Sequence record: MW460245.1
Length of the DNA: 64,000 nucleotides
Strand: one strand, 5' to 3'
Positions within the stretch are counted from its first letter, which is position 1; the number at the start of each line of letters is the position of its first letter. Shown here piece by piece: positions 2,119-47,099 of the stretch. The notes below the pieces were generated by a model that had not been told where the DNA came from, did not search any database, and saw only the letters and a program-made list of their open reading frames with translations. The position numbers and the translations under genes are program-made.

Positions 2119-3195
2119 CTAGACAGCAGCGAATTCTTGGCGGCGAGTTCTACCTTCAGCATGCTTTCGAGCACGCTCCCGCTGCTTGTTCTTTTTACGG
2201 ATTCGGTCAATTCGATCCTCGTACACTTGGTCAACAAAGAGCTCCAGTGTCTGGCGGTCTTCGTAGGTTATGAATTCTGGGATACCGAGCATCACGCGCA
2301 CAATACCGTTCGGGTCAGCGCGTTTTGCTGCCTTGCTTAATGCTTGACGAAGCTCATAGGACTTGTCAGCGTCCGTGAACCCCAAGACCTCCGTGATCGC
2401 ATCACCGTATTCCTCGGTAAGCGCCTCGAACGATTGGTCCTTGTTCATCTTGCGGATGATGTCATCTACTTCCGAGCGTGCGGACTTCAGCCAGTTCTGA
2501 ATGAAGGTCGTCAGCACGCCTTGCCGCGCGTCGCATCGGTTGATGGCCCTAATCATGACGGTCATGAAGACCTGAATAGTGTCATCAAGCGGATACGCGT
2601 GGTTGTAATCCTTGTAGCAAGCCTGAGCCTGCATGATGGTCATGCGTGTGTACTTCTCAACAATCTGGGAATGCCATTCACGCGCCTTCTCTGACCAGTG
2701 CTTCACCTGCTCAATCGCACCGTACAGATTCCCTGAAGGGCGCATACCTACTAGCTGCTCGATCGCCCGCATCTCAGCACGGCGTTGGAACATATCCATC
2801 TTGTGAAATGGACTGCTCAGCTTGGTGTAGCGCTGCGTCTGCGCCAGGAACAGATTGACAGCACCAAAGAGGATACCGCGATTGAAGTAATGCAGCTTCG
2901 CATTCTCAATCATCTTCTTTGGATTGTCCGACGTCAGAAGGTTAAAGAGGTGGATCGGCAGCTTACCTCGGTCGTCACTGCTGAACTTCGCAGAGGCTTT
3001 CCGAATCTGCCGACCCACCATCTTGGTCGCGTACACCTTGAAGAAGGTTGGGCACTCAATGATGATTGGCTCCAACGCATTCCACAGGAACATGTCGAGC
3101 GTCTGGAGGTACTGGAGGCTCGTATAATTGTCAGAAACTTTTTCCTTCGTGGCTTTAAGGTCTTCGAAGACCTTGGAATGCGTATAGGCTTTCAT
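2119..3195 (-). CDS. Phage RNA polymerase sigma factor-like protein (sigma70 region 2)
   Basis: IVEKYTRMTIMQA...LDDTIQVFMTVMIRAINRCDARQGVLTTFIQNWLKSA aligns by eye with RpoD region 2.1-2.4; no clear region 4. Confidence 0.65.
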   Translation of the reverse strand: MKAYTHSKVFEDLKATKEKVSDNYTSLQYLQTLDMFLWNALEPIIIECPTFFKVYATKMVGRQIRKASAKFSSDDRGKLPIHLFNLLTSDNPKKMIENAKLHYFNRGILFGAVNLFLAQTQRYTKLSSPFHKMDMFQRRAEMRAIEQLVGMRPSGNLYGAIEQVKHWSEKAREWHSQIVEKYTRMTIMQAQACYKDYNHAYPLDDTIQVFMTVMIRAINRCDARQGVLTTFIQNWLKSARSEVDDIIRKMNKDQSFEALTEEYGDAITEVLGFTDADKSYELRQALSKAAKRADPNGIVRVMLGIPEFITYEDRQTLELFVDQVYEDRIDRIRKKNKQRERARKHAEGRTRRQEFAAV

Positions 3196-3223
3196 GATGA
3201 ATGCTCGATGTTGCGTTACCTTC

Positions 3224-3233
3224 TATTTACGTC
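3224..3233 (-). promoter_or_regulatory. GACGTAAATA variant of the phage promoter motif
   Basis: 29 nt upstream of the sigma-like start. Confidence 0.45.
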
Positions 3234-3244
3234 CTACAGCGTAC

Positions 3245-3670
3245 TTACATGCCAGGAATCTTGTGCTTGATCGTCTCTACCAACTTCACCAAGTGCTTGC
3301 ACTGGGCAGGAATCATGCCAGGGTTCGTCACATCAGGATGCTGGCCGTTGCTATAGAAGATATCCGAAGCACCGCGGTTAGCAAGCGCCCATTCCCAGCG
3401 GTACAGGAAGTCATCGCACGAACACGAGACGTTGACGTTGAGCTTGTCGTCCAGGAACTTGATGACCGTCACATAGTGGCGGCGTTCATGGTTAGCGACC
3501 TTCTTACCATCCTGATCGAAATGGTGCGTGCTGTAAGACTGGCAAGCCACGAATGCCTTGCCGTCCTTCTTACCGTAGCCGGCCTTCATCTTCACCAGCT
3601 TGACGAACTGAGCGTTATCGATCCGATCCTTCGTAACGCGGCGCATGATCTGTTTCAGGTTCATCGACAC
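3245..3670 (-). CDS. SWIM-type zinc finger protein
   Basis: VSCSC...QCKH (CxC-xn-CxH) motif. Confidence 0.7.
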   Translation of the reverse strand: MSMNLKQIMRRVTKDRIDNAQFVKLVKMKAGYGKKDGKAFVACQSYSTHHFDQDGKKVANHERRHYVTVIKFLDDKLNVNVSCSCDDFLYRWEWALANRGASDIFYSNGQHPDVTNPGMIPAQCKHLVKLVETIKHKIPGM

Positions 3671-10018: not shown

Positions 10019-10881
10019 TATGCCATTGCCACGAAAAGGTGTTGTTGGAGGCTCAAGCAAATGTTGTTCGCAAGAGCGTACTCACCTGCGTATCGGTAAT
10101 TGGCCGCCGTTGCCTCACGGTTGATGAGCTCGTCGTCCCAGATGCTAGAGACTTCACCTGCGTAAGGCTTCTTGTAGACAGCCATCGGCGATACCATCAA
10201 GCGCTGCATGCCGTGCTCTTCGGCCCATGCAAATGCCCAGTCAGGGATCGTGTGATGCGGCGACTCAGGATCAGCATCGACCACGAACTTCAGGTAGTCA
10301 GCGCGGTTCAGCACCTTCTCCGACAGCTTACCGTACTTACCTGCCTTGTAGACAGCCTTCGGAGAGACAACCACCGTGATTTCAGAAAGCCAGAAGCTCT
10401 CAGCATCGCCTTTCTTGAACAGTGGCATCTCTGCATCCAGCAGCTCAAAGAAGGAGGCCTGCGTGCCGTTCGTTTCGATCTGGACTGCGAGGTATTCATC
10501 TCCGACGCGCTCGAGGAACGCAGCGAGGTTATGCTGGAGCGTAGGTTCGCCGCCGGTGATAACCAGTACACGTTTGCGTCGGTCAACGCGGAAGGTATCG
10601 ATGATCGAATCGATCTTGTCGAACGACATGACCTTACCTTCGTTGAACTGGAACGAGGTGTCGCAGAAACGGCAAGCGCCAGCCTCGCTCTTTGCTCCGT
10701 AGTTGCAGCCAGATAGACGGATGAAGACAGCAGGCATCCCGGCGTAGGGCCCTTCGCCCTGCAGCGTGTCGAAAATCGAGGTGACCAACAGTTCGTCAGG
10801 CTTCAGGATGTAATCGTATTCCGCTTTTGCAACGTTGCGGTCAACGTTCTGTACAACAATGGGGAACGTCTTATGCGTCAT
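10018..10881 (-). CDS. queE: 7-carboxy-7-deazaguanine synthase (radical SAM), atypical CX10CX2C motif
   Basis: SIFDTLQGEG...PAVFIRLSGC, CRFCDT, VITGGEP.LQ, QIETNG, VVSPK, SLQQH; RBS AAGGA before ATG 10881. Confidence 0.95.
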   Translation of the reverse strand: MTHKTFPIVVQNVDRNVAKAEYDYILKPDELLVTSIFDTLQGEGPYAGMPAVFIRLSGCNYGAKSEAGACRFCDTSFQFNEGKVMSFDKIDSIIDTFRVDRRKRVLVITGGEPTLQHNLAAFLERVGDEYLAVQIETNGTQASFFELLDAEMPLFKKGDAESFWLSEITVVVSPKAVYKAGKYGKLSEKVLNRADYLKFVVDADPESPHHTIPDWAFAWAEEHGMQRLMVSPMAVYKKPYAGEVSSIWDDELINREATAANYRYAGEYALANNICLSLQQHLFVAMA

Positions 10882-24174: not shown

Positions 24175-27100
24175 GCTTTCTCCTTCTTTGACTTCGCCTT
24201 GTCGATAGCTTCCTTAGCTGCCTTCTTAGCAGCCTTGCGTTCAGCCTTTTCAGAGGCGTCGAATTCATCCAGTGCAGTCTGAATCTGCTCGTCCAGATCA
24301 GTAACACCAAGCAGCGGGAAATGCTTCTGCAAGTAGTTACGAATCTTCGGATTGCGCCACGACTCTAGAATCTCGTCCATCACTTCCTCTTGCGTACCTT
24401 CGAGGAGGCCAAGCTCGTCAGCATCCTTCACAGTTTGCTTGAGGTTCGATAGCAGGTTCGGAATCGTCCAGTCCCACTTGTACGACTGCGAGTCAACTGC
24501 CGCGGTCTCCAGTTCGATCTCCGGTTCAACCGTGAACTCCAGACCGAATTCATCCTTGTACCGCTTCGTGACTTCATACGTTGCAGCCCATTGAAGCATG
24601 TGGATGACTGGCAGCATCATGCTATAGATAACGCTCAGATAGTTCGCATCGTGAACCACTCGGTTATACAGCACCTTGAGTTCCCACAGCGTCCGGCTCT
24701 GACCTTGCATAGCTGCAATCTTCGGCGCATGCTTGTAGTAGAGCTCCATGAAGACTCGCGATGCCTTGATACCGATCTCCGATGCAAGCCCCTGAACAGG
24801 ACCGTTGGTACCGCGACGCACCTGCTGGGACACAATCGCACGGTCAGTCGTCATAGCAGCTGGGAGGAAGCGACGACGGCCGATCGGCGAGTACACGTAA
24901 TACTCTTTCTCTGCAAGCTCCGACATGTCCCGCGTCCACTTAGCGCCGGCCTTAAACTCAGTCATCATCTTGTCGATGATACCCTGCGCATAGTCGGTAC
25001 GATCCTCTGCGAGCAGCTCAGCCAGCTTCTTATCTGCGGCGTTCAGTTCCTTGCGAATCGTTTTGATATCACGTTCGCCTTCACCCTTCTCCGCAGCAAG
25101 GAGCTCGTTGTATAGCGTACTGATGGACGACTTGAACGCGTTCATGTCTGCCTGCTTCGTGTCGATACCAAGCGTTTCTGCACCCTTGCCGTACAGAACA
25201 CCGAACACGACGGCCTTAATCGCGTCACGCAGCGGATCGCTCTTCTCCACCCACTTACCGAAGAATCGGAACACGTTCTGGATGTGAATGTCGCCCTTCG
25301 TCTTGAGCTCCTTGAACACCGCATCACGTTCCTCTTTTGTGAGGCATTTGATGAGTTGCTTACGAAGCTTCTGACCTGCCTTGAATGCACCAGCAAGGAC
25401 CTTGTCACCCGAGATAACAGACCAGATGCGAACCTCGTGTGCGCTGTAGTCGTAACGAACGAACAGCCTGCCCTTGGTCGTTTCAAACATCCGCTTGATG
25501 TACTTCGCAATCTTCGAACGCTGCGGAATCGTTTGCAACGATGGATTACGAGACGCAAGACGACCAGTCACAACGTCCCAGAACGAGTAGTCAGGTCGCA
25601 GGTGACTGTCAGTTACCGAGTCAGCGTTGCGCGTCAGCTTCTTAAACCAGCCACGCACGTAGGTACTCAGAAGCTTCTCAGTTTCCTGATACGTCGAATA
25701 AGACTGGAGAACCTTGTTCTTATCCTTGTACGCCTTCACGAACGCCTTGTCTGCCTGAGGCTCGCCAGTCTTCGTGTGGTCGAGGGGTTCGAGGCCCATG
25801 ACATCAAAGAACAGAGTACGCTTGTGGTCAGGCTTGCTCCACTTGAACACCCAGTTCGATACGTCCTTCTTCACCTTCGCGAATGCGAGCAACGACTTCG
25901 CCTTCAGACCTGAATCACCGATGAGGCGCTTGTTAGCCTCGATCACCTCAGGTTGCTGTCGCATCTCGTTCAATGCTTTGGACAGTTCAGCCTTCAGCGG
26001 CGACTCTTGACCCATCAAGAACTTCAGGTACTTCATCGAAACAAGCGAACCGTCCTCTCGCAGGTGCGACAGCTGGTGCGCGGTATCACTCATCTGGTAC
26101 ATCATGTGGCGAATGAAATACTTTTTGTAGTTCCGTTCCTCAAGTTGCATCATCGATGCGCGCTTGATTTGTTGCTTCTTCATGGCCAGCAGACTCACAA
26201 CGTCCGTTGCCATGTACTTCATCACGCTCTTCTTGTTCGGGCGAATCGCGATGATGGTCGCGCGGTCTTCCTTCTTGAACTCAGAGGTGAAGTAGGTGTC
26301 GTTACCGTAGCTGCACAGGATCGGAGCGAGACCACCATGCTTACCCTTCATGAAGCCAGATAGCAGTCCGATGTTTTCATCCAGCAAGTGTTCACCTGCT
26401 GTAATCTCCCAGACGCGATACCAAATCATCGGTATCTTCAATGCGCGTCGGATGATCCGCAAGTCAAACATCCCGTTGAAGGTCAGCAGCGTTTGATCTT
26501 GTACGACCGTCTCGCTGAACAACTCCTTGAGACGTTTCTTGATGTACTTGCGTTCGTCTTTGCTCCAGTCGGCCAGCGGGTGATCGACCGAAATGATGTA
26601 GCCCTTGTTCGGCGTGTGGTCGAACGCAAACTGGATCGTCAAAAGCTTGTTGTGCAGCACGCTAAGGTTCTTCGTCTCCGTGTCGACCGCAATCTCCTTC
26701 GCCTTGCGGAACATCACGCAGACCTTGTCGAACATCTCGATGCTGTCCACATACTTCGGGATAACCTCAAGCTTCGACAGGTCATGAGGATTGCGACCTA
26801 GCATGAGGTTCATCAAGTGACGACAGTAGAACCCGATCAGGTTCGCGTGTTCAGAGCTGCGGTCAAGCATCTTGAACAGATCGAGGGTCGGTACGACCTT
26901 CAAGCTGTGGCGCTCACCATCAGCCTTGTAAGACATATCGAACACCCAACCATTCTTGTAACGCGCATCCTCAACATCGGGATACAAAGCCTCGAATGCC
27001 TCAGTACCAGATACAAGCATGTGAGTCGGCTTCAGCTTCTTCACCAGTTTCTGGATGCGCTGCGCGAATTGCGCCTCAGCATCGCGTCGAGCCTGTTTCT

Positions 27101-40063: not shown

Positions 40064-40087
40064 AACAGGCACCACATGGTGCCTGTT
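40064..40087 (+). terminator. Hairpin, probable terminator
   Basis: AACAGGCACC/GGTGCCTGTT with a 4-nt loop. Confidence 0.55.
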
Positions 40088-40129
40088 GTCGCATTCAAGT
40101 ACAACACCAACCCTTTCCTAGAGGTTCTT

Positions 40130-40939
40130 ATGCAACGTACCATGGTCAAAGACTACAGCCTGCTCTCGTTCGACGTGGACGGCAAGGTTCACACGTCGAA
40201 GCGTCAGATTCGCATCATCACCGAAACGCGCACGAAGGGTTCGGTCGACGTGGTCCCGAACGGCTCGCAACTGGCAATCATCGGCAACGATACGTTCCTG
40301 TACAAGCGCAATCCGACGGGTGTGGTTCTCGTGAATGAACTGGTTTGCTATCGCAGCGCAGGCTGGATCCCGGGCGAAGTCAAGCCGTCATCCGGCTTCG
40401 GCAAGGCTATTGTCGAAGCGCTGTACTTGTTTGGTGCCATCACGCGTGACCAATACCACACGCACAAGAAGGCCATCAAGGCAGGCGAGGCAGAGGAAGC
40501 TGAGAAGAGCTCCTACGACACCCTCATCCACACGCTGCAATCGGCGGTGCGCAATCGTGGTACCAGCAATGTGCGCGCTATGCTGGACGAAGCCATCCTC
40601 GGCATCCCGGAGAAAGAGCGCGCAAAGATCGCCGCGCGAGTCACAGGGCTGCCTGCAGCTGGTTTCGAGTCGGCAGCTACCGAAAAGCCGAAGAAGGCTG
40701 AGAAGGTCGCGCGCAAGCAAACGCCGCACATGAAGAAGGCAGCAAAGCCTCAAGCAAAGAAGACGCTCCCGGCATCGCAAGCTGGCCTGAACCGTGCAGT
40801 GCAGTTGGACACGATGACGGCAGAAGGCAAGGCGAAGGTCGAAGCGGCTGTCGGTACGCTGACCGCAAAACCGGATGCAAAGCCGAAAGCAACGAAGGCG
40901 CGCAAAACGGGCGTGAAGGCATCGACGCCCCTCATCTAA
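40130..40939 (+). CDS. Hypothetical protein with Lys/Ala-rich histone-like C-terminal tail
   Basis: RBS GAGG; KKAAKP-type tail. Confidence 0.7.
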   Translation: MQRTMVKDYSLLSFDVDGKVHTSKRQIRIITETRTKGSVDVVPNGSQLAIIGNDTFLYKRNPTGVVLVNELVCYRSAGWIPGEVKPSSGFGKAIVEALYLFGAITRDQYHTHKKAIKAGEAEEAEKSSYDTLIHTLQSAVRNRGTSNVRAMLDEAILGIPEKERAKIAARVTGLPAAGFESAATEKPKKAEKVARKQTPHMKKAAKPQAKKTLPASQAGLNRAVQLDTMTAEGKAKVEAAVGTLTAKPDAKPKATKARKTGVKASTPLI

Positions 40940-40949
40940 GGAGAATCGA

Positions 40950-41444
40950 ATGAATCGAGCTCTTGCCTCGAAGCAGTACGACGAGAACCTTCACGAAGGC
41001 ATGCTGTTCCGCCTTTTCATTAGCTTCGATGACATGCTGTTGCGCGAGCAGGATGCTCCGTACTACACGACGGAAAGCGGGCGCATCATGTCGCGACTCG
41101 AGGCGTACAACGGCATCCGCCCCGAACACCTGATGCAGTTCACCTTGTTCCGTGACAAGGAAGGCGTTCCGAAGTACGCAGAAATCTTTGCGACCAACAT
41201 CGAGCGCCTGTACGCGAAGGGCATTCTCCTGCAGAAGGCTCTTAAGGTTCGTCGTCGCTTCGTCAACAAGCGCCGCATCGAACTGAACGAAGCGCAGCAA
41301 GCTGTGAAGGAGTCGCTGGCCTCGTCGCTCATGAGCGGCCTCCTCGAGTACCCGGAAGTGCCGCATAGCGTAACGCAACGTCTCGCAGAACACCTTGCGT
41401 CGAAGGTCACTGACCTGCTGAACGAAACTCTGTTCAAGGGCTAA
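40950..41444 (+). CDS. Hypothetical protein
   Basis: RBS AAGGAG. Confidence 0.7.
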   Translation: MNRALASKQYDENLHEGMLFRLFISFDDMLLREQDAPYYTTESGRIMSRLEAYNGIRPEHLMQFTLFRDKEGVPKYAEIFATNIERLYAKGILLQKALKVRRRFVNKRRIELNEAQQAVKESLASSLMSGLLEYPEVPHSVTQRLAEHLASKVTDLLNETLFKG

Positions 41445-41447
41445 GCC

Positions 41448-41645
41448 ATGCTGGCGCGAGTCATCCTGATGTTTGTGATCCTGACGTTTGCTGGTTTCTT
41501 CGGGTTCAAGGCGTATAAAGCCCTGCGCCTGAAGGATCGCCGTCTGGTTCGCCGTGATGCAGTAAAGAACGCAGCAATCCTGATCGTGTGTGCGCTGGTG
41601 TCGATGTGCGTTATCGCAGTCGCAACGCTCGCCGATCAACTCTGA
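41448..41645 (+). CDS. Small membrane protein
   Basis: Two TM segments flanking a basic loop. Confidence 0.6.
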   Translation: MLARVILMFVILTFAGFFGFKAYKALRLKDRRLVRRDAVKNAAILIVCALVSMCVIAVATLADQL

Positions 41646-41646
41646 T

Positions 41647-41752
41647 TCAGGGCTAACAGCAGGCAGGTTTACTCTAACCTGTAGTATGTTCGAGCGGAAT
41701 CGTGTCGCATCCTTGGCCGGAAGGACTCGTTTCACCCTGACCTGCTGCCTGA
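41647..41752 (+). ncRNA. Candidate structured ncRNA (multibranch)
   Basis: Closing helix TCAGG+CAGCAGG / CCTGCTG+CCTGA; inner hairpins CAGGTT/AACCTG and TCCTT/AAGGA. Confidence 0.4.
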
Positions 41753-41756
41753 TACC

Positions 41757-41831
41757 CGACCAGTTAGTAGAGTGGTAAACAGCCTAGTCGCCTAGCTAGG
41801 AAGCGGCGGGTTCGACTCCCGCACTGGTCGA
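41757..41831 (+). tRNA. Non-canonical tRNA-like RNA (8-bp acceptor, 8-nt anticodon loop UCGCCUAG)
   Basis: CGACCAGT/ACTGGTCG; T-arm GCGGG-TTCGACT-CCCGC; anticodon stem CCTAG/CTAGG; D-loop AGTGGTA. Confidence 0.75.
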
Positions 41832-41861
41832 CTACCACTTTCTCACCCATTGAGGTTTTAT

Positions 41862-42656
41862 ATGAAGCGTTTGTTCCGTGCAGCAGCAATCATCGCCATT
41901 GGCCTGTCGGTCGCGGCGTGTGGCAAAATCGAAACCGGTAACGCAGGTCTGCGTACCACGTACACTGGCAAGGTCGAACAGGAACCGATCGGTCAAGGCT
42001 TCTACACCAAGTTCACCTCGACGGTGAACGAGTACAGCCTGAAGAAGGTTCCCGTCGTTCTGGAGAACATGACGCCGAAGGTCGCAGGCGGTCTGCGCCT
42101 GAAGGAACTGGACGTGCAGGTGATCTACCAGATCAATCCGACGAGCCTGTATCGCCTGGCGACTCAGTACACGGGCATGGATGCCATCGATCCGAACGAC
42201 AGTGACATCCGCTGGCCGGCGTACCAACGCGTGAAGGCTGTATCGCTCTCCGAGATCGCAAACGTCGTCTCGCAGTTCGATTCGATGGAGATTCACCAGA
42301 AGCGTAACGCCATCGAGAACGATGCGAAGGCAGCTATCCAGAAAGCCCTCGACGCGTCCGATCCGGGCGCATTCCAAATCGTGGAAGTCATCGTCAAGCA
42401 AGTGCTGACCGATGAATCGGTGGAGAACGCGATCCGCAACGTCGCAACGAAGCAGAAGGAAAACGAGGCTGCACTCCTGGAAGTGAGCATCGCCAAGCGT
42501 CGTGCCGAGGCAGTCGCTGCAACTGCGAACACCCTGACGCCTGCATTCCTGCAGCACGAATACAACCAAGCGCTCGCGAAGTTCGCCGACAACAAGAATG
42601 TGACGGTGGTGCTGGATGGTTCCGCCTCGAACAAGATCCTGAACCTCAAGCAATAA
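41862..42656 (+). CDS. SPFH/band-7 (prohibitin-like) lipoprotein
   Basis: Lipobox AACG, I.TGNAGLRTTYTG, C-terminal coiled coil. Confidence 0.85.
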   Translation: MKRLFRAAAIIAIGLSVAACGKIETGNAGLRTTYTGKVEQEPIGQGFYTKFTSTVNEYSLKKVPVVLENMTPKVAGGLRLKELDVQVIYQINPTSLYRLATQYTGMDAIDPNDSDIRWPAYQRVKAVSLSEIANVVSQFDSMEIHQKRNAIENDAKAAIQKALDASDPGAFQIVEVIVKQVLTDESVENAIRNVATKQKENEAALLEVSIAKRRAEAVAATANTLTPAFLQHEYNQALAKFADNKNVTVVLDGSASNKILNLKQ

Positions 42657-42657
42657 C

Positions 42658-42849
42658 GTGAGCAAGCGACTCCCCTACGAAAGTGCCCCGTTCAACTACC
42701 GGGGCATCCACTGCGCCAATCAGAAGTGCGGCGTAGTGGTAGGCTTCACTGAAGGTATGCAGAGCTACACCCTTTGCCCGGCTTGCTACAAGGAAGCCGA
42801 ACGTGAACACGATGCGCAGACTGCGCAGCAACTCAAGGAATCGAAATGA
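42658..42849 (+). CDS. Small zinc-ribbon protein
   Basis: CANQKC...CPAC. Confidence 0.5.
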   Translation: MSKRLPYESAPFNYRGIHCANQKCGVVVGFTEGMQSYTLCPACYKEAEREHDAQTAQQLKESK

Positions 42850-43184
42850 ACGCAGCATACCAAGAACTTCTCGCGAAGAAAGCCGCACTCGAAAAGCAAA
42901 TCGAGGAAGTCCGTGCAGCCGAGAAGGTGCCGGCAATCGCGAAGGTTCAGGAACTGATTCGCCTGTACAACCTCAAGCCTGCTGAAGTCTTCGGCCCGGC
43001 AGAACTCCAGGGCGAACTGTTCCCGGCGAAACGCAAGCAAGGCGTTCCGAAGGGCACGAAGTTCAAGCCGAAGTACATGGATCCGAAGACTGGCAGCACG
43101 TGGAGCGGTCGTGGTAAGCCGCCGAACTGGATCAAGGGTGTGGCTGACCGCACTTCGTTCCTCATCAACAAGAACGAAGCATGA
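42846..43184 (+). CDS. hns: H-NS family nucleoid/silencing protein (Bv3F-like)
   Basis: YQELLAKKAALEKQIEEVR oligomerisation helix; PKYMDPKTGSTWSGRGKPPNWI DNA-binding motif. Confidence 0.92.
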   Translation: MNAAYQELLAKKAALEKQIEEVRAAEKVPAIAKVQELIRLYNLKPAEVFGPAELQGELFPAKRKQGVPKGTKFKPKYMDPKTGSTWSGRGKPPNWIKGVADRTSFLINKNEA

Positions 43185-43465
43185 AGGTCAAGTACGTAGC
43201 GGACGACGGCACTGAATTCTGGAACGAGGATCAGTGCCGCGCGTATGAAACCCTCATCAAGGCAGCATCGAATTCAGCATTCAAGCAAGTGGTGAAGGAG
43301 TTGTTTGACGGTTGTACCACGTGGTATCGCGGTTCGGATCCGAACGATCCTGACGTGAAGGTTTTCCGTGTTGAAGAAGATATGCAGAAGTTTACCGCTA
43401 ACCTCGTTCGCGCACTTCCGGCTCTCCAAGGAGAACTGACTCGCGCGCTCAACAAAGGAGTCTGA
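43181..43465 (+). CDS. Hypothetical protein
   Basis: KYVADDGTEF..E..C..YE phage-type motif; ATGA coupling. Confidence 0.65.
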   Translation: MKVKYVADDGTEFWNEDQCRAYETLIKAASNSAFKQVVKELFDGCTTWYRGSDPNDPDVKVFRVEEDMQKFTANLVRALPALQGELTRALNKGV

Positions 43466-43466
43466 C

Positions 43467-44273
43467 ATGGGTTTCAAGAAAGGATTCTTCCGCGGCCTGC
43501 TGGCCGGTATCGTCATCGGCGCAGTTGGTTTCTTGAGCGCGCAGGCAGCACACGCCAAGATTCCGCCGACTGTTCGCATCGGAGTGGACGCTTCGTATCC
43601 GCCGTTCGAGTACAAGAAGCCGAGCGGTGAACTGACTGGCTTCGGTGTGGATCTCGGCAACGAGATTTGCAAGCGCATGCAGGTCAAGTGCGTGTGGGTG
43701 GAGAACAGTTTCGACGGCATGATCCCAGGCCTGAAGGCTCGCAAGTTCGATCTGTTCCTGAGCTCGATGTCCATGACGCCGAAGCGCAAGGAACAGATCG
43801 ACTTCACCGACAAGACGGCTCGCACGCCGACGTTCCTGATCGCGAAGAAAGGTTCGACGCTGTTGCCGACTCCTGAATCGCTGAAGGGCAAGGCAGTCGG
43901 TGTGCTGCAAGGCTCCATGCAGGAGACGTATGCGAAGCAGGTGTGGATGCCGGCAGGTGCACAGGTGCTGTCGTATCAGAACCAAGACCTCGTGTATCAG
44001 GATCTGGTCGCTGGTCGTGTGGACGCAACGCTGCAATCCGGCGTGCAGGCGAAGCTGGGCTTTCTGAACACGGCTCAAGGCGCGAACTACCAATTCGTCG
44101 GCAAGGAAGTCTTCGATCCGAAAATCTTCGGACCGGGTCAAGGCATCGGCGTGCGCAAGGAAGATCAGGACCTGCGTGACGCGGTGAACAAGGCCCTCGC
44201 CTCGATCCGCGCCGATGGTACCTACAACAAGATCGCGAAGCCATATTTCGACTTCGACGTTTATGGAGAGTGA
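43467..44273 (+). CDS. Periplasmic basic amino-acid ABC substrate-binding protein (HisJ/ArgT family)
   Basis: Signal peptide AQAAHA; RIGVDASYPPFE, FDGMIPGLKARKFD, R.EQIDFT, VYQDL.AGR.DA, GIGVRKED, DGTY..IAK.YF. Confidence 0.93.
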   Translation: MGFKKGFFRGLLAGIVIGAVGFLSAQAAHAKIPPTVRIGVDASYPPFEYKKPSGELTGFGVDLGNEICKRMQVKCVWVENSFDGMIPGLKARKFDLFLSSMSMTPKRKEQIDFTDKTARTPTFLIAKKGSTLLPTPESLKGKAVGVLQGSMQETYAKQVWMPAGAQVLSYQNQDLVYQDLVAGRVDATLQSGVQAKLGFLNTAQGANYQFVGKEVFDPKIFGPGQGIGVRKEDQDLRDAVNKALASIRADGTYNKIAKPYFDFDVYGE

Positions 44274-44276
44274 CGG

Positions 44277-44621
44277 ATGAACATCATCCGCATTGACGGT
44301 CGTATCGATTACGAGAACACGACTGCGTGGTACATCAGTGCAATCATCGTCCATTTCCAACCCGGAAAGAACGAACACGAATCGCAGTTCCTCGGCGGCT
44401 TCTTCGTGAAAGCAGAAACCGAGTATCACGCTGTTGGTCAGCTCACGAAGGACTCTATCCTTCCTGTCGCCCCGACCTGCGCATGCCACGATATGGAGAT
44501 TCAGGTCGGCGCCATCGATCCGGAAATGATCGAGAAGGTTCCTGAAGCTTTCTGGAACAAGTGCCTGACTAAGGACGAGATCGAAGCTGTAAACGCTCGA
44601 CTGGGAGGGCAACTGCAATGA
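44277..44621 (+). CDS. Hypothetical protein
   Basis: RBS GGAG; operonic. Confidence 0.6.
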   Translation: MNIIRIDGRIDYENTTAWYISAIIVHFQPGKNEHESQFLGGFFVKAETEYHAVGQLTKDSILPVAPTCACHDMEIQVGAIDPEMIEKVPEAFWNKCLTKDEIEAVNARLGGQLQ

Positions 44622-44675
44622 TTCACCTCGAAAAGGTCTACCACAATGACTTTCTACCTCACAAAGGAGAAGGTC

Positions 44676-44840
44676 ATGAGCAGAACGGTGAAGGGCAGTA
44701 AGGCCCCTGGTTTCCAATACTGGAGCAAACGACCCGTCAAAGGGGAAACGCGCGCATCGCCAGGGGCGCATAAGTTTACCAAGAAACTCACGCACCGAGC
44801 CGAACGGCGGCAAGGGCGTAAAGAATGCAAAGAAGGTTAA
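44676..44840 (+). CDS. Small basic hypothetical protein
   Basis: RBS AAGGAG before ATG 44676. Confidence 0.5.
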   Translation: MSRTVKGSKAPGFQYWSKRPVKGETRASPGAHKFTKKLTHRAERRQGRKECKEG

Positions 44841-44859
44841 CCTCTTAAAGGAGTTCATC

Positions 44860-45291
44860 ATGGCAATCAAGGGTCAAAAGGCGCAAGCACAATCGAACCG
44901 CAAGCTGACGGCAGGTGAAGTGCGTGCGCAGCGTGCGATGGTGTCTGGCTTCGCAAGCGCAAATCAAGCGCAGGCAAACGAGCCGATCACGGCAATGAAG
45001 GCTGTCCCGGCAATCACCGGCGGCACGGAGGAGGCACTCGACTACCTGCAGAGCGCACTGAACGATATCAGCTACTCTGTCGAGCAGGTGATCAACATGT
45101 GCCAGCCGCACCTGCCGGAATACCTCTTCGCGCCTTCGGATGGCGAAGAAGGGTGCATCGGTTACGAGACGCGACACAACGGCGTCAGCAACTCGAACAC
45201 GGCGACGGTGAATCGCATCAACAGCCAGATCGATGAGCTGGATCGCATCCAACGCCGCGTCGAATTCCTGCGCGCGCACCTGAAAGTGTAA
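44860..45291 (+). CDS. Hypothetical protein
   Basis: RBS AAGGAG. Confidence 0.7.
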   Translation: MAIKGQKAQAQSNRKLTAGEVRAQRAMVSGFASANQAQANEPITAMKAVPAITGGTEEALDYLQSALNDISYSVEQVINMCQPHLPEYLFAPSDGEEGCIGYETRHNGVSNSNTATVNRINSQIDELDRIQRRVEFLRAHLKV

Positions 45292-45354
45292 GTGACGTTC
45301 CTGCAATTGGAAGGCTTCGCCTCGTTCGGAGCCTTCCCCTCTCCTGAGGACTTC

Positions 45355-45885
45355 ATGCACACCCCTCCCGAAGCAAATTCGGACTTGTTCCCGGATACCC
45401 AGATCGTCATCAAGCCTTCCGGTTACGACGGTCAGGCTCTTGCCCTCGACATCCTGCCTGTGATCCTCGAGGCGAACGACAAGCTGCACGAGCGTGTCTA
45501 CGCGACTCTGTACAACCCGGAACACACCTCGAAGTATTCGCGAGACTTCCGCACGATCCACTACAACACTGGTCAACGCAGTGGTATGACCAGCGCCATC
45601 ATGAAGCTGGCGAAGGAAGGCGATCTTGTCATCGCACCGGACACGAACTGGCTGGAAGGCTGGCAGGATGAGCTCGGTAACTGCGCAGCTATCTCCACCA
45701 CGAAGGATCGTGTTACCAACATCCGCTGCGCGTTCTGGCATACGCATGCAGAGACTGTGTTCAACAACATCTGGATCGTCGGTGCTTTCGGTCATCCATG
45801 GACCGCGTGGAGCCAAACCGATATTGGCCTCGTCCGTTCTCGTCTCATCAAGAACGGTCACCAGCGAATGATCCTGATCGGGTGA
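45355..45885 (+). CDS. Hypothetical protein with degenerate P-loop-like segment
   Basis: TGQRSGMTSAI..L...DLVIAP; RBS GAGGA. Confidence 0.55.
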   Translation: MHTPPEANSDLFPDTQIVIKPSGYDGQALALDILPVILEANDKLHERVYATLYNPEHTSKYSRDFRTIHYNTGQRSGMTSAIMKLAKEGDLVIAPDTNWLEGWQDELGNCAAISTTKDRVTNIRCAFWHTHAETVFNNIWIVGAFGHPWTAWSQTDIGLVRSRLIKNGHQRMILIG

Positions 45886-45894
45886 CTCCAGAAG

Positions 45895-45904
45895 GTAGTA
45901 AATA
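45895..45904 (+). promoter_or_regulatory. GTAGTAAATA motif directly upstream of tRNA(CAU)
   Basis: Ends 9 nt before the tRNA 5' end, as expected of a -10-type element. Confidence 0.65.
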
Positions 45905-45913
45905 AATCGTGTA

Positions 45914-45991
45914 GGGCGGGAAGCTTAACGGGTATAAGCACTCGGCTCATAACCGAGCGATAGATGGGTTCGAGCCCCTCACCGCCCACCA
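45914..45991 (+). tRNA. tRNA-Met or Ile2 (anticodon CAU), CCA encoded
   Basis: CTCGG-CTCATAA-CCGAG arm, D-stem GCTT/AAGC, TTCGAGC loop; atypical A8, G7-A66 mismatch, bulged T in the T-stem. Confidence 0.85.
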
Positions 45992-46008
45992 TTCACAAGG
46001 AGCAGCAA

Positions 46009-46467
46009 ATGGTAGATCGAAAGATTGTGCATCTTCAGGTCGGTGATGACAACTGGACGCCGACGGTCGAGGAACTGATGAGCATCGTCGAGATGTTCCA
46101 ATCGACGGAACTGGACAAGGGCACGGACGCTGCTCTCAGCGCCGTTGTCGCAACGCGTAATGCAGTTCAACCGACGGTCATCGAACTGAAGGATGGCGAG
46201 GAGCTTGTGCCTGTCGCCGTACCGATCAGCCTTTCGCAGGCAGTCGCAGCGCGCGTCCTGGGCGACCTCATCGCAAACAAGGTTACGGTCCAAGGCGACG
46301 CATCGCCTGACTTCCATTCGGGTGTTCACTACGCGATGGAAATGGTGCGTAAGAACATCACGCGCATCGTCTACGAGTACACGTCAGGTCAGCAGCCGGA
46401 CGCAGAGAATGAATGCGATCCTGGCGAATTCGATTCGGTCGATCTTGAACCTGACGTCGACCGTTAA
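46009..46467 (+). CDS. Hypothetical protein
   Basis: RBS AAGGAG. Confidence 0.7.
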   Translation: MVDRKIVHLQVGDDNWTPTVEELMSIVEMFQSTELDKGTDAALSAVVATRNAVQPTVIELKDGEELVPVAVPISLSQAVAARVLGDLIANKVTVQGDASPDFHSGVHYAMEMVRKNITRIVYEYTSGQQPDAENECDPGEFDSVDLEPDVDR

Positions 46468-46473
46468 GTCAAC

Positions 46474-46634
46474 GGGGAACGTGAGCAGAGAGGCTTAATG
46501 CGAGGAGGTCGCGTAATCTCCGAAAACATCAGCCGTCCTTCGACGCCTAATGCTGCGAGGCAAGCGCGTAGACTCCTGTTAGCCAGTGACCGCTCTCACT
46601 GGTGTACCGTACGTTCGAATCGTACCGTTCCCCA
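46474..46634 (+). ncRNA. tRNA-like RNA with 8-bp acceptor, 8-nt loop UCGCGUAA and 87-nt structured variable region
   Basis: GGGGAACG/CGTTCCCC; T-arm GTACG-TTCGAAT-CGTAC; D-stem GCA/TGC; stem GGAGG/TCTCC; insert hairpins CGTC/GACG and CCAGTGA/TCACTGG. Confidence 0.75.
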
Positions 46635-46661
46635 CCCATCACCACAGCCCTCGAGGTTCTT

Positions 46662-46868
46662 ATGCCGGTGAAGATTACCATTGCAGCACCTGAAGGCTTC
46701 CCGAAGTTCGCGGTCGCATCGTTGATTGCTGAGATGCTCAAGCAGCATGGCTGTCTGATCGACTATGAACTGGCAGCACCGAAGTACAACCACGCAACCG
46801 CATGCCTCGCTATGAGCCATGTCGATAAGAACGATCCTCGTAATCGCATTGTCATTAGCGAATCGTGA
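46662..46868 (+). CDS. Small hypothetical protein
   Basis: RBS GAGG. Confidence 0.5.
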   Translation: MPVKITIAAPEGFPKFAVASLIAEMLKQHGCLIDYELAAPKYNHATACLAMSHVDKNDPRNRIVISES

Positions 46869-46907
46869 AGGTTCTAAAGTGTTGTAAATGTGCAACAGTC
46901 TCGCAGG

Positions 46908-46937
46908 TTGACGTTGACTTTTCAAACGTGTTATGAT
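46908..46937 (+). promoter_or_regulatory. Possible sigma70 promoter TTGACG-N18-TATGAT
   Basis: Intergenic AT-richer region. Confidence 0.35.
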
Positions 46938-47027
46938 TCGGTCCCGCACTCCACACAGTTTGAAAACGCGGTCTGTTGTATGAATGCAACACTGAGCTTG
47001 ACAAGCAGTTAGCATCAAGACAGCAAA

Positions 47028-47037
47028 GCAGTAAATA
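47028..47037 (+). promoter_or_regulatory. GCAGTAAATA variant motif
   Basis: 63 nt upstream of 47100. Confidence 0.5.
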
Positions 47038-47099
47038 GTTGGTAGCTTGTTCATATGAACGGCGATTGACAGTCAATCCACTCTGAAAGGAAACACACC

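Follow-up and report, generated by a model that had tools for sequence, protein, structure and literature searches.

A 161-base element at positions 46474 to 46634 (plus strand) of Burkholderia phage BCSR5 (MW460245.1) carries no annotation and is a real tRNA-derived gene. To go by its sequence, its body appears to be a complete class II, serine-type tRNA (acceptor, D arm, long variable arm, C48, and T arm), and structure prediction indicates that its expansion is the anticodon arm, rebuilt as a structured domain of 75 nucleotides (nt). The RNA is probably non-decoding, and we consider it evenly balanced whether the gene, with its serine-type body and rebuilt anticodon arm, acts as a non-decoding tRNA mimic. 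The window that we analyzed comprises bases 1 to 64000 (64,000 nt) of the BCSR5 genome, which is 227,351 bp long and belongs to a phage from sewage in Israel. An earlier note on the window had singled out the element as a tRNA-like RNA with an 87-nt variable region. The element falls outside every Rfam family, and no homologous sequence was found for it.

Detection of the element and comparison with chance

We wrote a strict descriptor that required an 8-bp acceptor with only Watson-Crick pairs abutting a 5-bp T stem, also with only Watson-Crick pairs, and a TTCRANN loop. This descriptor matched the BCSR5 genome twice, at the element and at a tRNA at 41757. When we applied it to 60 first-order-Markov genomes, the mean was 0.017 matches, and only 1 of the 60 genomes contained any match. 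Folding of the 164-nt RNA gave -62.3 kcal/mol (z = -3.2), and 0/200 shuffled sequences folded equally well.

This tRNA-shaped gene is missed by the standard detectors, and the default searches of both Rfam and ARAGORN were empty. ARAGORN at its default settings, with or without the tmRNA and intron modes, reported nothing at the element. Rfam 15, which includes the tRNA family RF00005, reported nothing at gathering thresholds or at E≤10 in a search of 501 nt. When introns were allowed and the threshold was lowered to 80%, ARAGORN called a tRNA with a 64-nt intron at the element, but this call is uninformative because the same mode at a 90% threshold returned 98 "intron tRNAs" across the BCSR5 genome. 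We also built our own covariance model from 30 phage class II tRNAs. This model matched only the T arm of the element (13.7 bits, E = 0.023); it could not span the element's two expansions and was undecisive between the folds described below.

A serine-type tRNA body

The acceptor stem pairs GGGGAACG (46474 to 46481) with CGTTCCCC (46626 to 46633) through eight Watson-Crick pairs at pair probabilities of 0.95 to 1.0, which is the perfect 8-bp acceptor that had been described before. Both the sequence and the ARAGORN drawing made at a relaxed threshold show the 3' strand, CGUUCCCC, running into an A, the discriminator of an 8-bp stem, and then into CC (46626 to 46636). The last A of CCA is not encoded because the base after CC is C. 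Relative to tRNA-Ser genes, G46474 provides an extra eighth acceptor pair (position -1). Pair 3-70 is G-C, in agreement with the earlier statement that the element has no G3-U70. The T arm, GUACG-UUCGAAU-CGUAC with G53-C61 (46609 to 46625; GTACG-TTCGAAT-CGTAC in the DNA), is as perfect as had been reported, and its 5-bp stem, together with the 8-bp acceptor, bears out the proposed 8/5 stems. The T arm is the local match of our class II covariance model, and its 17-mer is common in phage tRNAs, being found in >120 viral contigs.

A D arm had also been proposed. The arm is present, but we corrected its boundaries to a GCA/UGC stem with an 11-nt loop, GAGAGGCUUAA, at 46485 to 46501. It has A14, G15, G18, G19, and A21, as well as C11-G24. 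The exact 17-mer of this arm, GCAGAGAGGCTTAATGC, is identical in 23 viral contigs. Ordinary tRNA-Ser genes of 85 to 90 nt account for 11 of these 23 loci (anticodons GCU, UGA, or CGA), and all 11 read U8-G9-GCA...UGC-N26 followed by the anticodon stem; roughly 9 of the 23 loci are non-canonical. Over the segment from G7 to the D arm, the element is identical to T4 tRNA-Ser at 19/21 bases, with one gap. The identity of the D arm and the match to T4 tRNA-Ser therefore point to a class II, serine-type body, and the novel architecture that the earlier note had seen here gives way to a known one. The gap in the T4 alignment falls in the linker, which consists of U8, G9, and one extra A (46482 to 46484). 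This extra A after G9 is missing from all tRNA-Ser relatives, and 23/23 IMG/VR loci with the same D arm read UG-GCA.

On the 5' side of the T arm lies a class II variable arm of 30 nt (46578 to 46607), which is made up of GU/AC, an internal loop, an 8-bp stem (GCCAGUGA/UCACUGGU), and the loop CCGCUC. The variable arm was present in every predicted fold. It begins right after the closing stem of the central domain and stops one base short of the T stem. The base left between them is C48 (46608), the Levitt-pair partner of G15, and a C before the T stem is also found in nearly all canonical tRNA-Ser relatives. Overall, the tRNA body of the element has ~31 stem pairs with zero mismatches, and all of the tertiary-contact bases are intact.

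The element resembles tRNA-Ser in U8, G9, C11-G24, the long variable arm, C48, and the canonical T arm, and its acceptor, GGGAACG/CGUUCCC, resembles GGAAACG/CGUUUCC. It is unlike tRNA-Ser in that 75 nt stand in place of the anticodon arm, so that a 7-nt loop with an NGA or GCU anticodon is missing. It is also unlike tRNA-Ser in that position 73 is C and is paired with G-1, so that the discriminator is A (or C) and not G, in its 30-nt variable arm, and in escaping all tRNA models. The body has three peculiarities: the extra A after G9, the extra pair G-1:C73 (which gives 8/5 stems and then A-C-C), and the abnormal center. A phage tRNA on another contig (L069) is class II, has the same T arm, and has an acceptor, GGGAAUG/CGUUCCC, nearly that of the element. 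ARAGORN assigns this 95-nt L069 tRNA (10293 to 10388, minus strand) the anticodon UGAG, and four bases there imply a loop of 8 nt.

Two folds of the center

In the minimum-free-energy (MFE) and centroid folds, a 75-nt central domain (46503 to 46577) takes the place of the 17-nt anticodon arm. G46502 is position 26 by homology, so the anticodon stem is expected to start from A46503. In the predicted long-arm fold, AGGAG (46503 to 46507) closes on CUCCU (46573 to 46577) and encloses 65 nt; the arm continues through the helices CGCGU/GCGCG and UCUC/GAGG and ends in the apical hairpin CGUC-CUUC-GACG. The long-arm cloverleaf is both the MFE and the centroid topology and has an energy of -59.7 kcal/mol with the homology-based D arm. 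Its stem closes 65 nt, so there is no 7-nt anticodon loop in this fold. As in tRNA-Ser, G46502 takes position 26 here, and the variable arm extends from position 44 to C48.

The earlier note had placed an anticodon-like stem, GGAGG-TCGCGTAA-TCTCC, at 46504 to 46521. This stem exists in the sequence, with a G.U pair next to the loop, and a constrained fold gave the local hairpin GGAGG(U)-CGCGUA-(A)UCUCC, with a loop of 8 nt, or of 6 nt if U-A pairs. As an anticodon arm, however, it is a minor conformer. The pairs of the hairpin have an ensemble probability of 0.026, and the cloverleaf that uses the hairpin as its anticodon arm has an energy of -57.0 kcal/mol in the constrained fold, which is 2.7 kcal/mol less stable. 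In this fold, the base before the putative anticodon is C, so there is no U33. The two folds are mutually exclusive because 46555 to 46577 is largely complementary to 46503 to 46520. The hairpin at 46504 to 46521 would presumably form first in transcription. On these predictions, we incline toward the long-arm fold, and we give the hairpin fold a smaller but real chance.

The choice of fold bears on the 87 nt between the hairpin and the T arm (46522 to 46608). The helices that had been described there, CAGC/GCTG around CGTC/GACG and CCAGTGA/TCACTGG, are all present. The description of these 87 nt as a single variable region did not hold, however: they comprise 57 nt of the expanded anticodon domain and the genuine 30-nt variable arm.

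A repeated heptamer and a second odd tRNA

Three copies of a heptamer, CGCSUAR, lie in the central domain between 46510 and 46571 (CGCGUAA at 46510 to 46516, CGCCUAA at 46544 to 46550, and CGCGUAG at 46565 to 46571). The genome has 44 and 52 copies per strand, and nowhere else in the 227-kb genome, on either strand, do three copies fall within 100 nt (post hoc Poisson P of ~5e-6 for the cluster). By direct count, 46504 to 46521 is identical to 46559 to 46576 at 12/18 positions. With this identity and the repeats, the domain resembles two copies of an anticodon arm separated by a hairpin, and it apparently arose through duplication of that arm on either side of an inserted hairpin. One reading of the heptamer is [G/C]UA with a purine after it, corresponding to a Tyr or amber anticodon and R37, with C instead of U33 before it. 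Another reading is an Ala codon, GCS, with the stop codon UAR after it. We considered amber recoding that needs a CUA suppressor and rejected it, as TAG behaves like the other stop codons in BCSR5. We also rejected a mobile repeat, as no part of the element longer than 15 nt recurs in the genome.

The same heptamer occurs in the loop of a second non-canonical tRNA (41757 to 41832, plus strand), which is annotated as tRNA-Ala and which ARAGORN reports as tRNA-??? (anticodon 'cc'). This tRNA has a stem, CCUAG/CUAGG, with an 8-nt loop, UCGCCUAG (or 6 bp and a 6-nt loop). It reaches 35.2 bits with the Rfam tRNA model, only with permissive filters, and its CCA is not encoded. The loop of the hairpin at 46504 to 46521, UCGCGUAA, equals UCGCCUAG at 6/8 positions. 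In a sample of 751 unique phage tRNAs, nine had odd anticodon-loop sizes, and none contained the motif CGCSUAR.

Analogues in other phages

Through the shared T arm and D arm, we traced tRNA bodies of comparable architecture in other phages. Ralstonia phage RP12 (NC_041911.1, L032) has two unannotated tRNA genes (2919 to 3026 and 3134 to 3238) that flank its single annotated tRNA-Asn. RP12 gene 1 encodes a 108-nt class II tRNA whose anticodon loop contains a 19-nt insertion; it reaches 45.9 bits with our own class II model and 35.8 bits with the Rfam tRNA model, which is above the gathering threshold. RP12 gene 2 has a 37-nt anticodon loop (a 30-nt insertion). We compared RP12 with RP31 for covariation, and none was obtainable because the regions are identical. 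Beside the RP12 tRNA genes, two non-coding stretches fold strongly (2601 to 2920, 320 nt, -126 kcal/mol; 3241 to 3520, 280 nt, -151 kcal/mol), and neither matches an Rfam family at gathering thresholds.

Two other analogues have both the anticodon arm and the variable arm expanded. The first (L166 to L168; L167 1975 to 2140, minus strand) is a 165-nt serine-type body in the tRNA cluster of a 318-kb contig, with an 8-bp stem at the anticodon position that closes ~50 nt and a variable arm of 45 nt. The second (L127, 3444 to 3575) is a 132-nt serine-type body in a phage tRNA cluster, with the T arm of the element and a 21-nt loop. More serine-type bodies are without a 7-nt anticodon loop: L197 carries 13 nt there, including the palindrome UGCGCA, and L205 only 3 nt (CAU). 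L191 has the same D arm as the element and an 8-nt loop. L176 and L184 are serine-type bodies with a normal 7-nt loop and variable arms of 43 to 55 nt.

Some of these bodies show signs of maintained structure. L202 and L211 are serine-type bodies with a GUCA tetraloop in place of an anticodon loop; of the 6 differences between them, 5 fall in stems, and pairing is kept at all 5. A 172-kb IMG/VR contig (L086) encodes four tRNA-like paralogues of 143 to 146 nt (434 to 578, 942 to 1085, 1283 to 1424, and 1681 to 1824). In the L086 paralogues, the acceptor, D, and T arms are normal, the loop of one hairpin is invariably CUCUCAG, and an extra arm of ~70 nt separates this hairpin from the D arm; compensatory changes are seen in 24/40 predicted pairs. 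Pairs of bodies that lack a 7-nt anticodon loop also have central motifs in common (AAUAGCCCUA in L188 and L178; CAUGAAUAGA in L201 and L050), which suggests that there are several conserved families. We checked the standard detectors on L166 to L168 (ARAGORN), L167 and L127 (Rfam at gathering thresholds), the L086 paralogues (Rfam), and RP12 gene 2. All of these were either missed by ARAGORN or scored below the Rfam threshold.

Sequences of the T4 species 1 and 2 RNAs have been available since the 1970s, and species 1 RNA is a 50-year-old precedent for stable tRNA-like RNAs of phage tRNA clusters. Species 1 RNA (rnaC, 139 nt) is encoded in the T4 tRNA cluster and is the closest described analogue of the element. 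Like the element, it lies among phage tRNA genes, its canonical T arm (CCGGG-UUCGAAU-CCCGG) abuts an acceptor-like stem, a long hairpin (10 bp in rnaC) precedes the T arm on its 5' side, and one long irregular arm stands where the anticodon arm would be. It differs from the element, whose tRNA-Ser D arm is complete, in lacking a recognizable D arm and in the two U.U mismatches of its acceptor. Local alignment of rnaC with the element gave only a T-loop-like GUUCGRAU match. The function of species 1 RNA was still called unknown in 2022 (PMC9697503). With this precedent and the analogous expanded bodies in other phages, the label of a "new class," which the earlier note had applied to what is an orphan sequence, is too strong. 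A tRNA-derived RNA in a phage tRNA cluster is a known kind of element, and it is the broader population of expanded serine-type bodies that is apparently undescribed. Our literature searches found no account of short anticodon-loop insertions in phage tRNAs, of tRNA decoys, or of expanded serine-type bodies.

The element also has features in common with tRNA-Sec and allo-tRNAs (8/5, 8/4, or 9/3 stems), namely, the 8-bp acceptor and 5-bp T stem, along with a long variable arm on a serine-type body. It is unlike tRNA-Sec in that its D arm has 3 bp and 11 nt instead of 6 bp and 4 nt and in that it has no UCA anticodon, and the Rfam tRNA-Sec family did not match the element at E≤10. We rejected a relationship with YrlA or Y RNA, as there was no Rfam match and the termini of those RNAs are at the opposite end of the molecule.

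Genomic setting and homologue searches

The element lies in a 194-nt intergenic gap between two hypothetical genes (46009 to 46467 and 46662 to 46868) and on the same strand as both. Its end is 25 nt from the start codon of the next gene, at 46662. A tRNA-Met (45914 to 45991) sits 480 nt upstream on the same strand, and the BCSR5 record has 2 tRNAs annotated genome-wide. The region from 40076 to 47099 is a 7-kb accessory island that holds all three tRNA-type genes (the element, the tRNA at 41757, and tRNA-Met). Host-like genes are found in the same island and encode an SPFH/Band 7 protein, a periplasmic family 3 solute-binding protein, and an H-NS-like protein. None of the element's neighbors (SPFH, solute-binding, H-NS, and proteins of unknown function) is linked to RNA, and we rejected the neighbors as a clue to function. 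Elsewhere in the window, 26923 to 26990 (minus strand) weakly matched a loose tRNA descriptor, with an acceptor of 7 to 8 bp, G.U pairs in the T stem, and a length of only 66 to 68 nt; this match is probably due to chance.

The nearest phages are phiRSL1 and BcepSauron, whose topoisomerase has ~50% amino-acid identity to that of BCSR5. The island at 40.0 to 47.1 kb, with both odd tRNAs and tRNA-Met, is missing at the syntenic position in both phages, and the syntenic gaps contain promoter-like sequence and no tRNA-like element.

Searches for the element itself found only BCSR5 among 50,697 phage records (blastn, distant mode), nothing among plasmids (blastn), and no match in IMG/VR to an exact 25-mer of the element. 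A pattern made from the acceptor and T loop gave 24 matches in JGI metagenomes and GTDB genomes, all of which were due to chance or to unrelated tRNAs. We also searched with flanking proteins in a set of 5.8 billion proteins. The upstream flanking protein found only itself, the product of a gene ~1.5 kb downstream found itself and one 47%-identical protein on a 1.5-kb contig, and a third flanking-protein query found nothing.

A proposed non-decoding tRNA mimic and its alternatives

Beyond a serine-type body with an expanded anticodon arm, every step of the mechanism is one that we infer. The element would be transcribed with the surrounding operon, since we found no promoter-like or terminator-like site in its flanks, and it would be excised from the longer transcript. 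RNase P and 3' trimming would release the RNA as they do a tRNA, and the host CCA enzyme would finish the 3' end. The product would fold into an L shape with a very long arm on the anticodon side and would not decode. Seryl-tRNA synthetase (SerRS) and most factors that bind the tRNA body ignore the anticodon, so an RNA with this body would be a non-decoding mimic. Such a mimic might occupy, or be charged by, a tRNA-binding factor of the host or phage, with SerRS as the obvious candidate. The three CGCSUAR copies may present the loop motif of tRNA 41757 to whatever recognizes that loop.

Several results weigh against a mimic of this kind. The element is an orphan, with no homologue in the collections searched and no compensatory change for any of its helices. 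The flanking proteins are likewise without relatives in IMG/VR, and we found no genes for tRNA-related enzymes near the element. The analogues are alike in architecture, but their homology to the element is not demonstrable, and the descriptors used to trace them admitted only bodies whose stems are intact, which biased the selection. The statistic for the heptamer was computed post hoc. Finally, the energy gap between the two folds is 2.7 to 5 kcal/mol, which is too small to decide between them by thermodynamics alone.

In a second explanation, which we regard as possible but doubtful, the element is a recently inactivated tRNA-Ser-type gene with a duplication or insertion of ~55 to 58 nt in the anticodon loop that has not yet decayed. 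A direct repeat, CGCGTA, flanks the insert (46510 to 46515 and 46565 to 46570), and this repeat and the 12/18 identical units are typical of slippage or duplication. A single duplication, however, leaves the third heptamer copy (46544 to 46550) unexplained, and the insert is not random sequence but a long stable coaxial extension (z = -3.2). The location in the 7-kb accessory island, which is not in BcepSauron or phiRSL1, is consistent with inactivation, as is the orphan status and hence the lack of demonstrable conservation. The other non-Met tRNA of BCSR5 is abnormal as well, with its 8-nt loop, and both genes fit tRNA-gene decay; this too counts against a functional mimic. On the other side, the ~31 stem pairs of the body are without a mismatch, every tertiary-contact base has been kept, and comparable non-decoding bodies in other phages show compensatory changes.

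A decoding RNA seems unlikely to us. In this case, the hairpin GGAGG-UCGCGUAA-UCUCC would supply a functional anticodon loop of 8 nt, with GUA and then A (tyrosine-like), and the RNA would have a class II body with A73 and an 87-nt variable region and would decode while evading nucleases. Bacterial tRNA-Tyr is class II and has A73, which counts in favor of this possibility. So do the position of the hairpin directly after the D arm, its presumed early formation during transcription, the 6/8 likeness of its loop to that of tRNA 41757, and the rarity of odd loop sizes among phage tRNAs (9/751), with the motif in none of them. L176 and L184 also combine a 7-nt loop with variable arms of 43 to 55 nt, but the 87-nt, three-hairpin variable region required here exceeds that of any analogue. 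The other objections concern the hairpin. Its ensemble probability is 0.026 and its stability is 2.7 to 5 kcal/mol worse, the 57 nt downstream are largely complementary to it, and the C before the putative anticodon means that there is no U33. To accommodate this fold, moreover, the D stem must contain an A.G mismatch or position 26 must be filled by two bases, and no tRNA-Ser relative is built that way. Also in favor of a decoding RNA, phage tRNAs have been described whose mutated anticodon loops let them evade the tRNA nucleases of the host (PMC10264068, PMC11555353). Like the element, they are phage encoded and have an abnormality confined to the anticodon-loop region, but they keep a 7-nt decoding loop, and the loop in the element measures 65 nt (8 nt if the minor fold forms). 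Insertions or decoys are not mentioned in PMC10264068.

We give still less weight to an intron-containing pre-tRNA from which ~58 nt would be spliced to leave a 7-nt loop; according to where the junction falls, the loop would read GU-CGA-GA (Ser), GU-GUA-GA (Tyr), or GU-CUA-GA (amber suppressor). The extra sequence lies within the anticodon loop and is stacked on the anticodon stem, which it extends, an arrangement also found in archaeal and eukaryotic pre-tRNAs. RP12 tRNA genes have insertions of 19 nt and 30 nt at the same place, one of them above the Rfam gathering threshold. ARAGORN in intron mode at 80% does call a tRNA with a 64-nt intron, but the 98 such calls at the 90% threshold strip this call of weight. 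A bulge-helix-bulge consists of two 3-nt bulges 4 bp apart at the exon-intron borders; the element has none and instead has internal loops of 2x4 and 2x3 around a 5-bp helix. To our knowledge, bacteria, the hosts here, lack a tRNA splicing endonuclease. The RtcB and RNA ligase of BcepSauron had no tblastn match in the whole BCSR5 genome. The catalytic core of group I introns (P3-P9) is at least about 200 nt, and an insert of ~58 nt is far below group I size. No intron or ribozyme family, Intron_gpI included, matched at E≤10. The earlier note had likewise excluded a group I intron, and this conclusion stands.

An element that is not of the tRNA type is very improbable: as a mini tmRNA, it would have an Ala codon and a stop codon in each heptamer (GCS UAR), which recalls the end of a tmRNA tag, along with a tRNA-like acceptor and T arm and a long helix at the place of the anticodon arm, but its pair 3-70 is G3-C70 where a tmRNA has G3.U70, its D stem is genuine, its variable arm is of class II, and it has no pseudoknots or credible tag frame, and the ARAGORN tmRNA mode (default and 80%) and the Rfam tmRNA families were negative, as the earlier note would have it; as a small protein gene, it would use the 57-amino-acid open reading frame at 46498 to 46671 (plus strand), whose ATG at 46498 follows an RBS-like (ribosome-binding-site-like) GAGAGG, but this frame is probably spurious because the apparent ribosome-binding site is the conserved tRNA D loop and there is no credible homologue, the sole match among 1.84 billion proteins being a weak one to a repetitive 2,576-amino-acid protein; and as a cis-acting leader of the gene at 46662, it would profit from the short distance of 25 nt to the next start codon, but nothing in the predicted folds pairs with the ribosome-binding site of that gene.

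Implications

The non-decoding mimic that we propose for BCSR5 may be one case of something wider. As a tentative reading, large phages may carry recurrent, undescribed class II serine-type bodies in which the anticodon arm, the variable arm, or both have been replaced by large structured domains. Such RNAs would be processed, and perhaps aminoacylated, without decoding; their role could be to carry amino acids or to act on tRNA-directed factors of the host as decoys or sponges. The BCSR5 element would then be an extreme member of this population and, through its three heptamer copies, would act as a sponge or regulator for whatever recognizes the loop of tRNA 41757. Alternatively, within the same reading, the insert could be removed by an unknown tRNA splicing route of the bacterium or phage.

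Phage tRNA genes are now partly understood as countermeasures to host tRNA nucleases. The element and about a dozen analogues indicate that annotation overlooks a population of tRNA-body RNAs with non-decoding centers, and default detectors, which miss such RNAs, are not a safe basis for tRNA counts. If the element is a relic, it documents the death of a phage tRNA gene by duplication within the anticodon arm. If it is functional, it is one small gene in a cultivable phage with a clear structural prediction, and it could show what a tRNA mimic does in infection.

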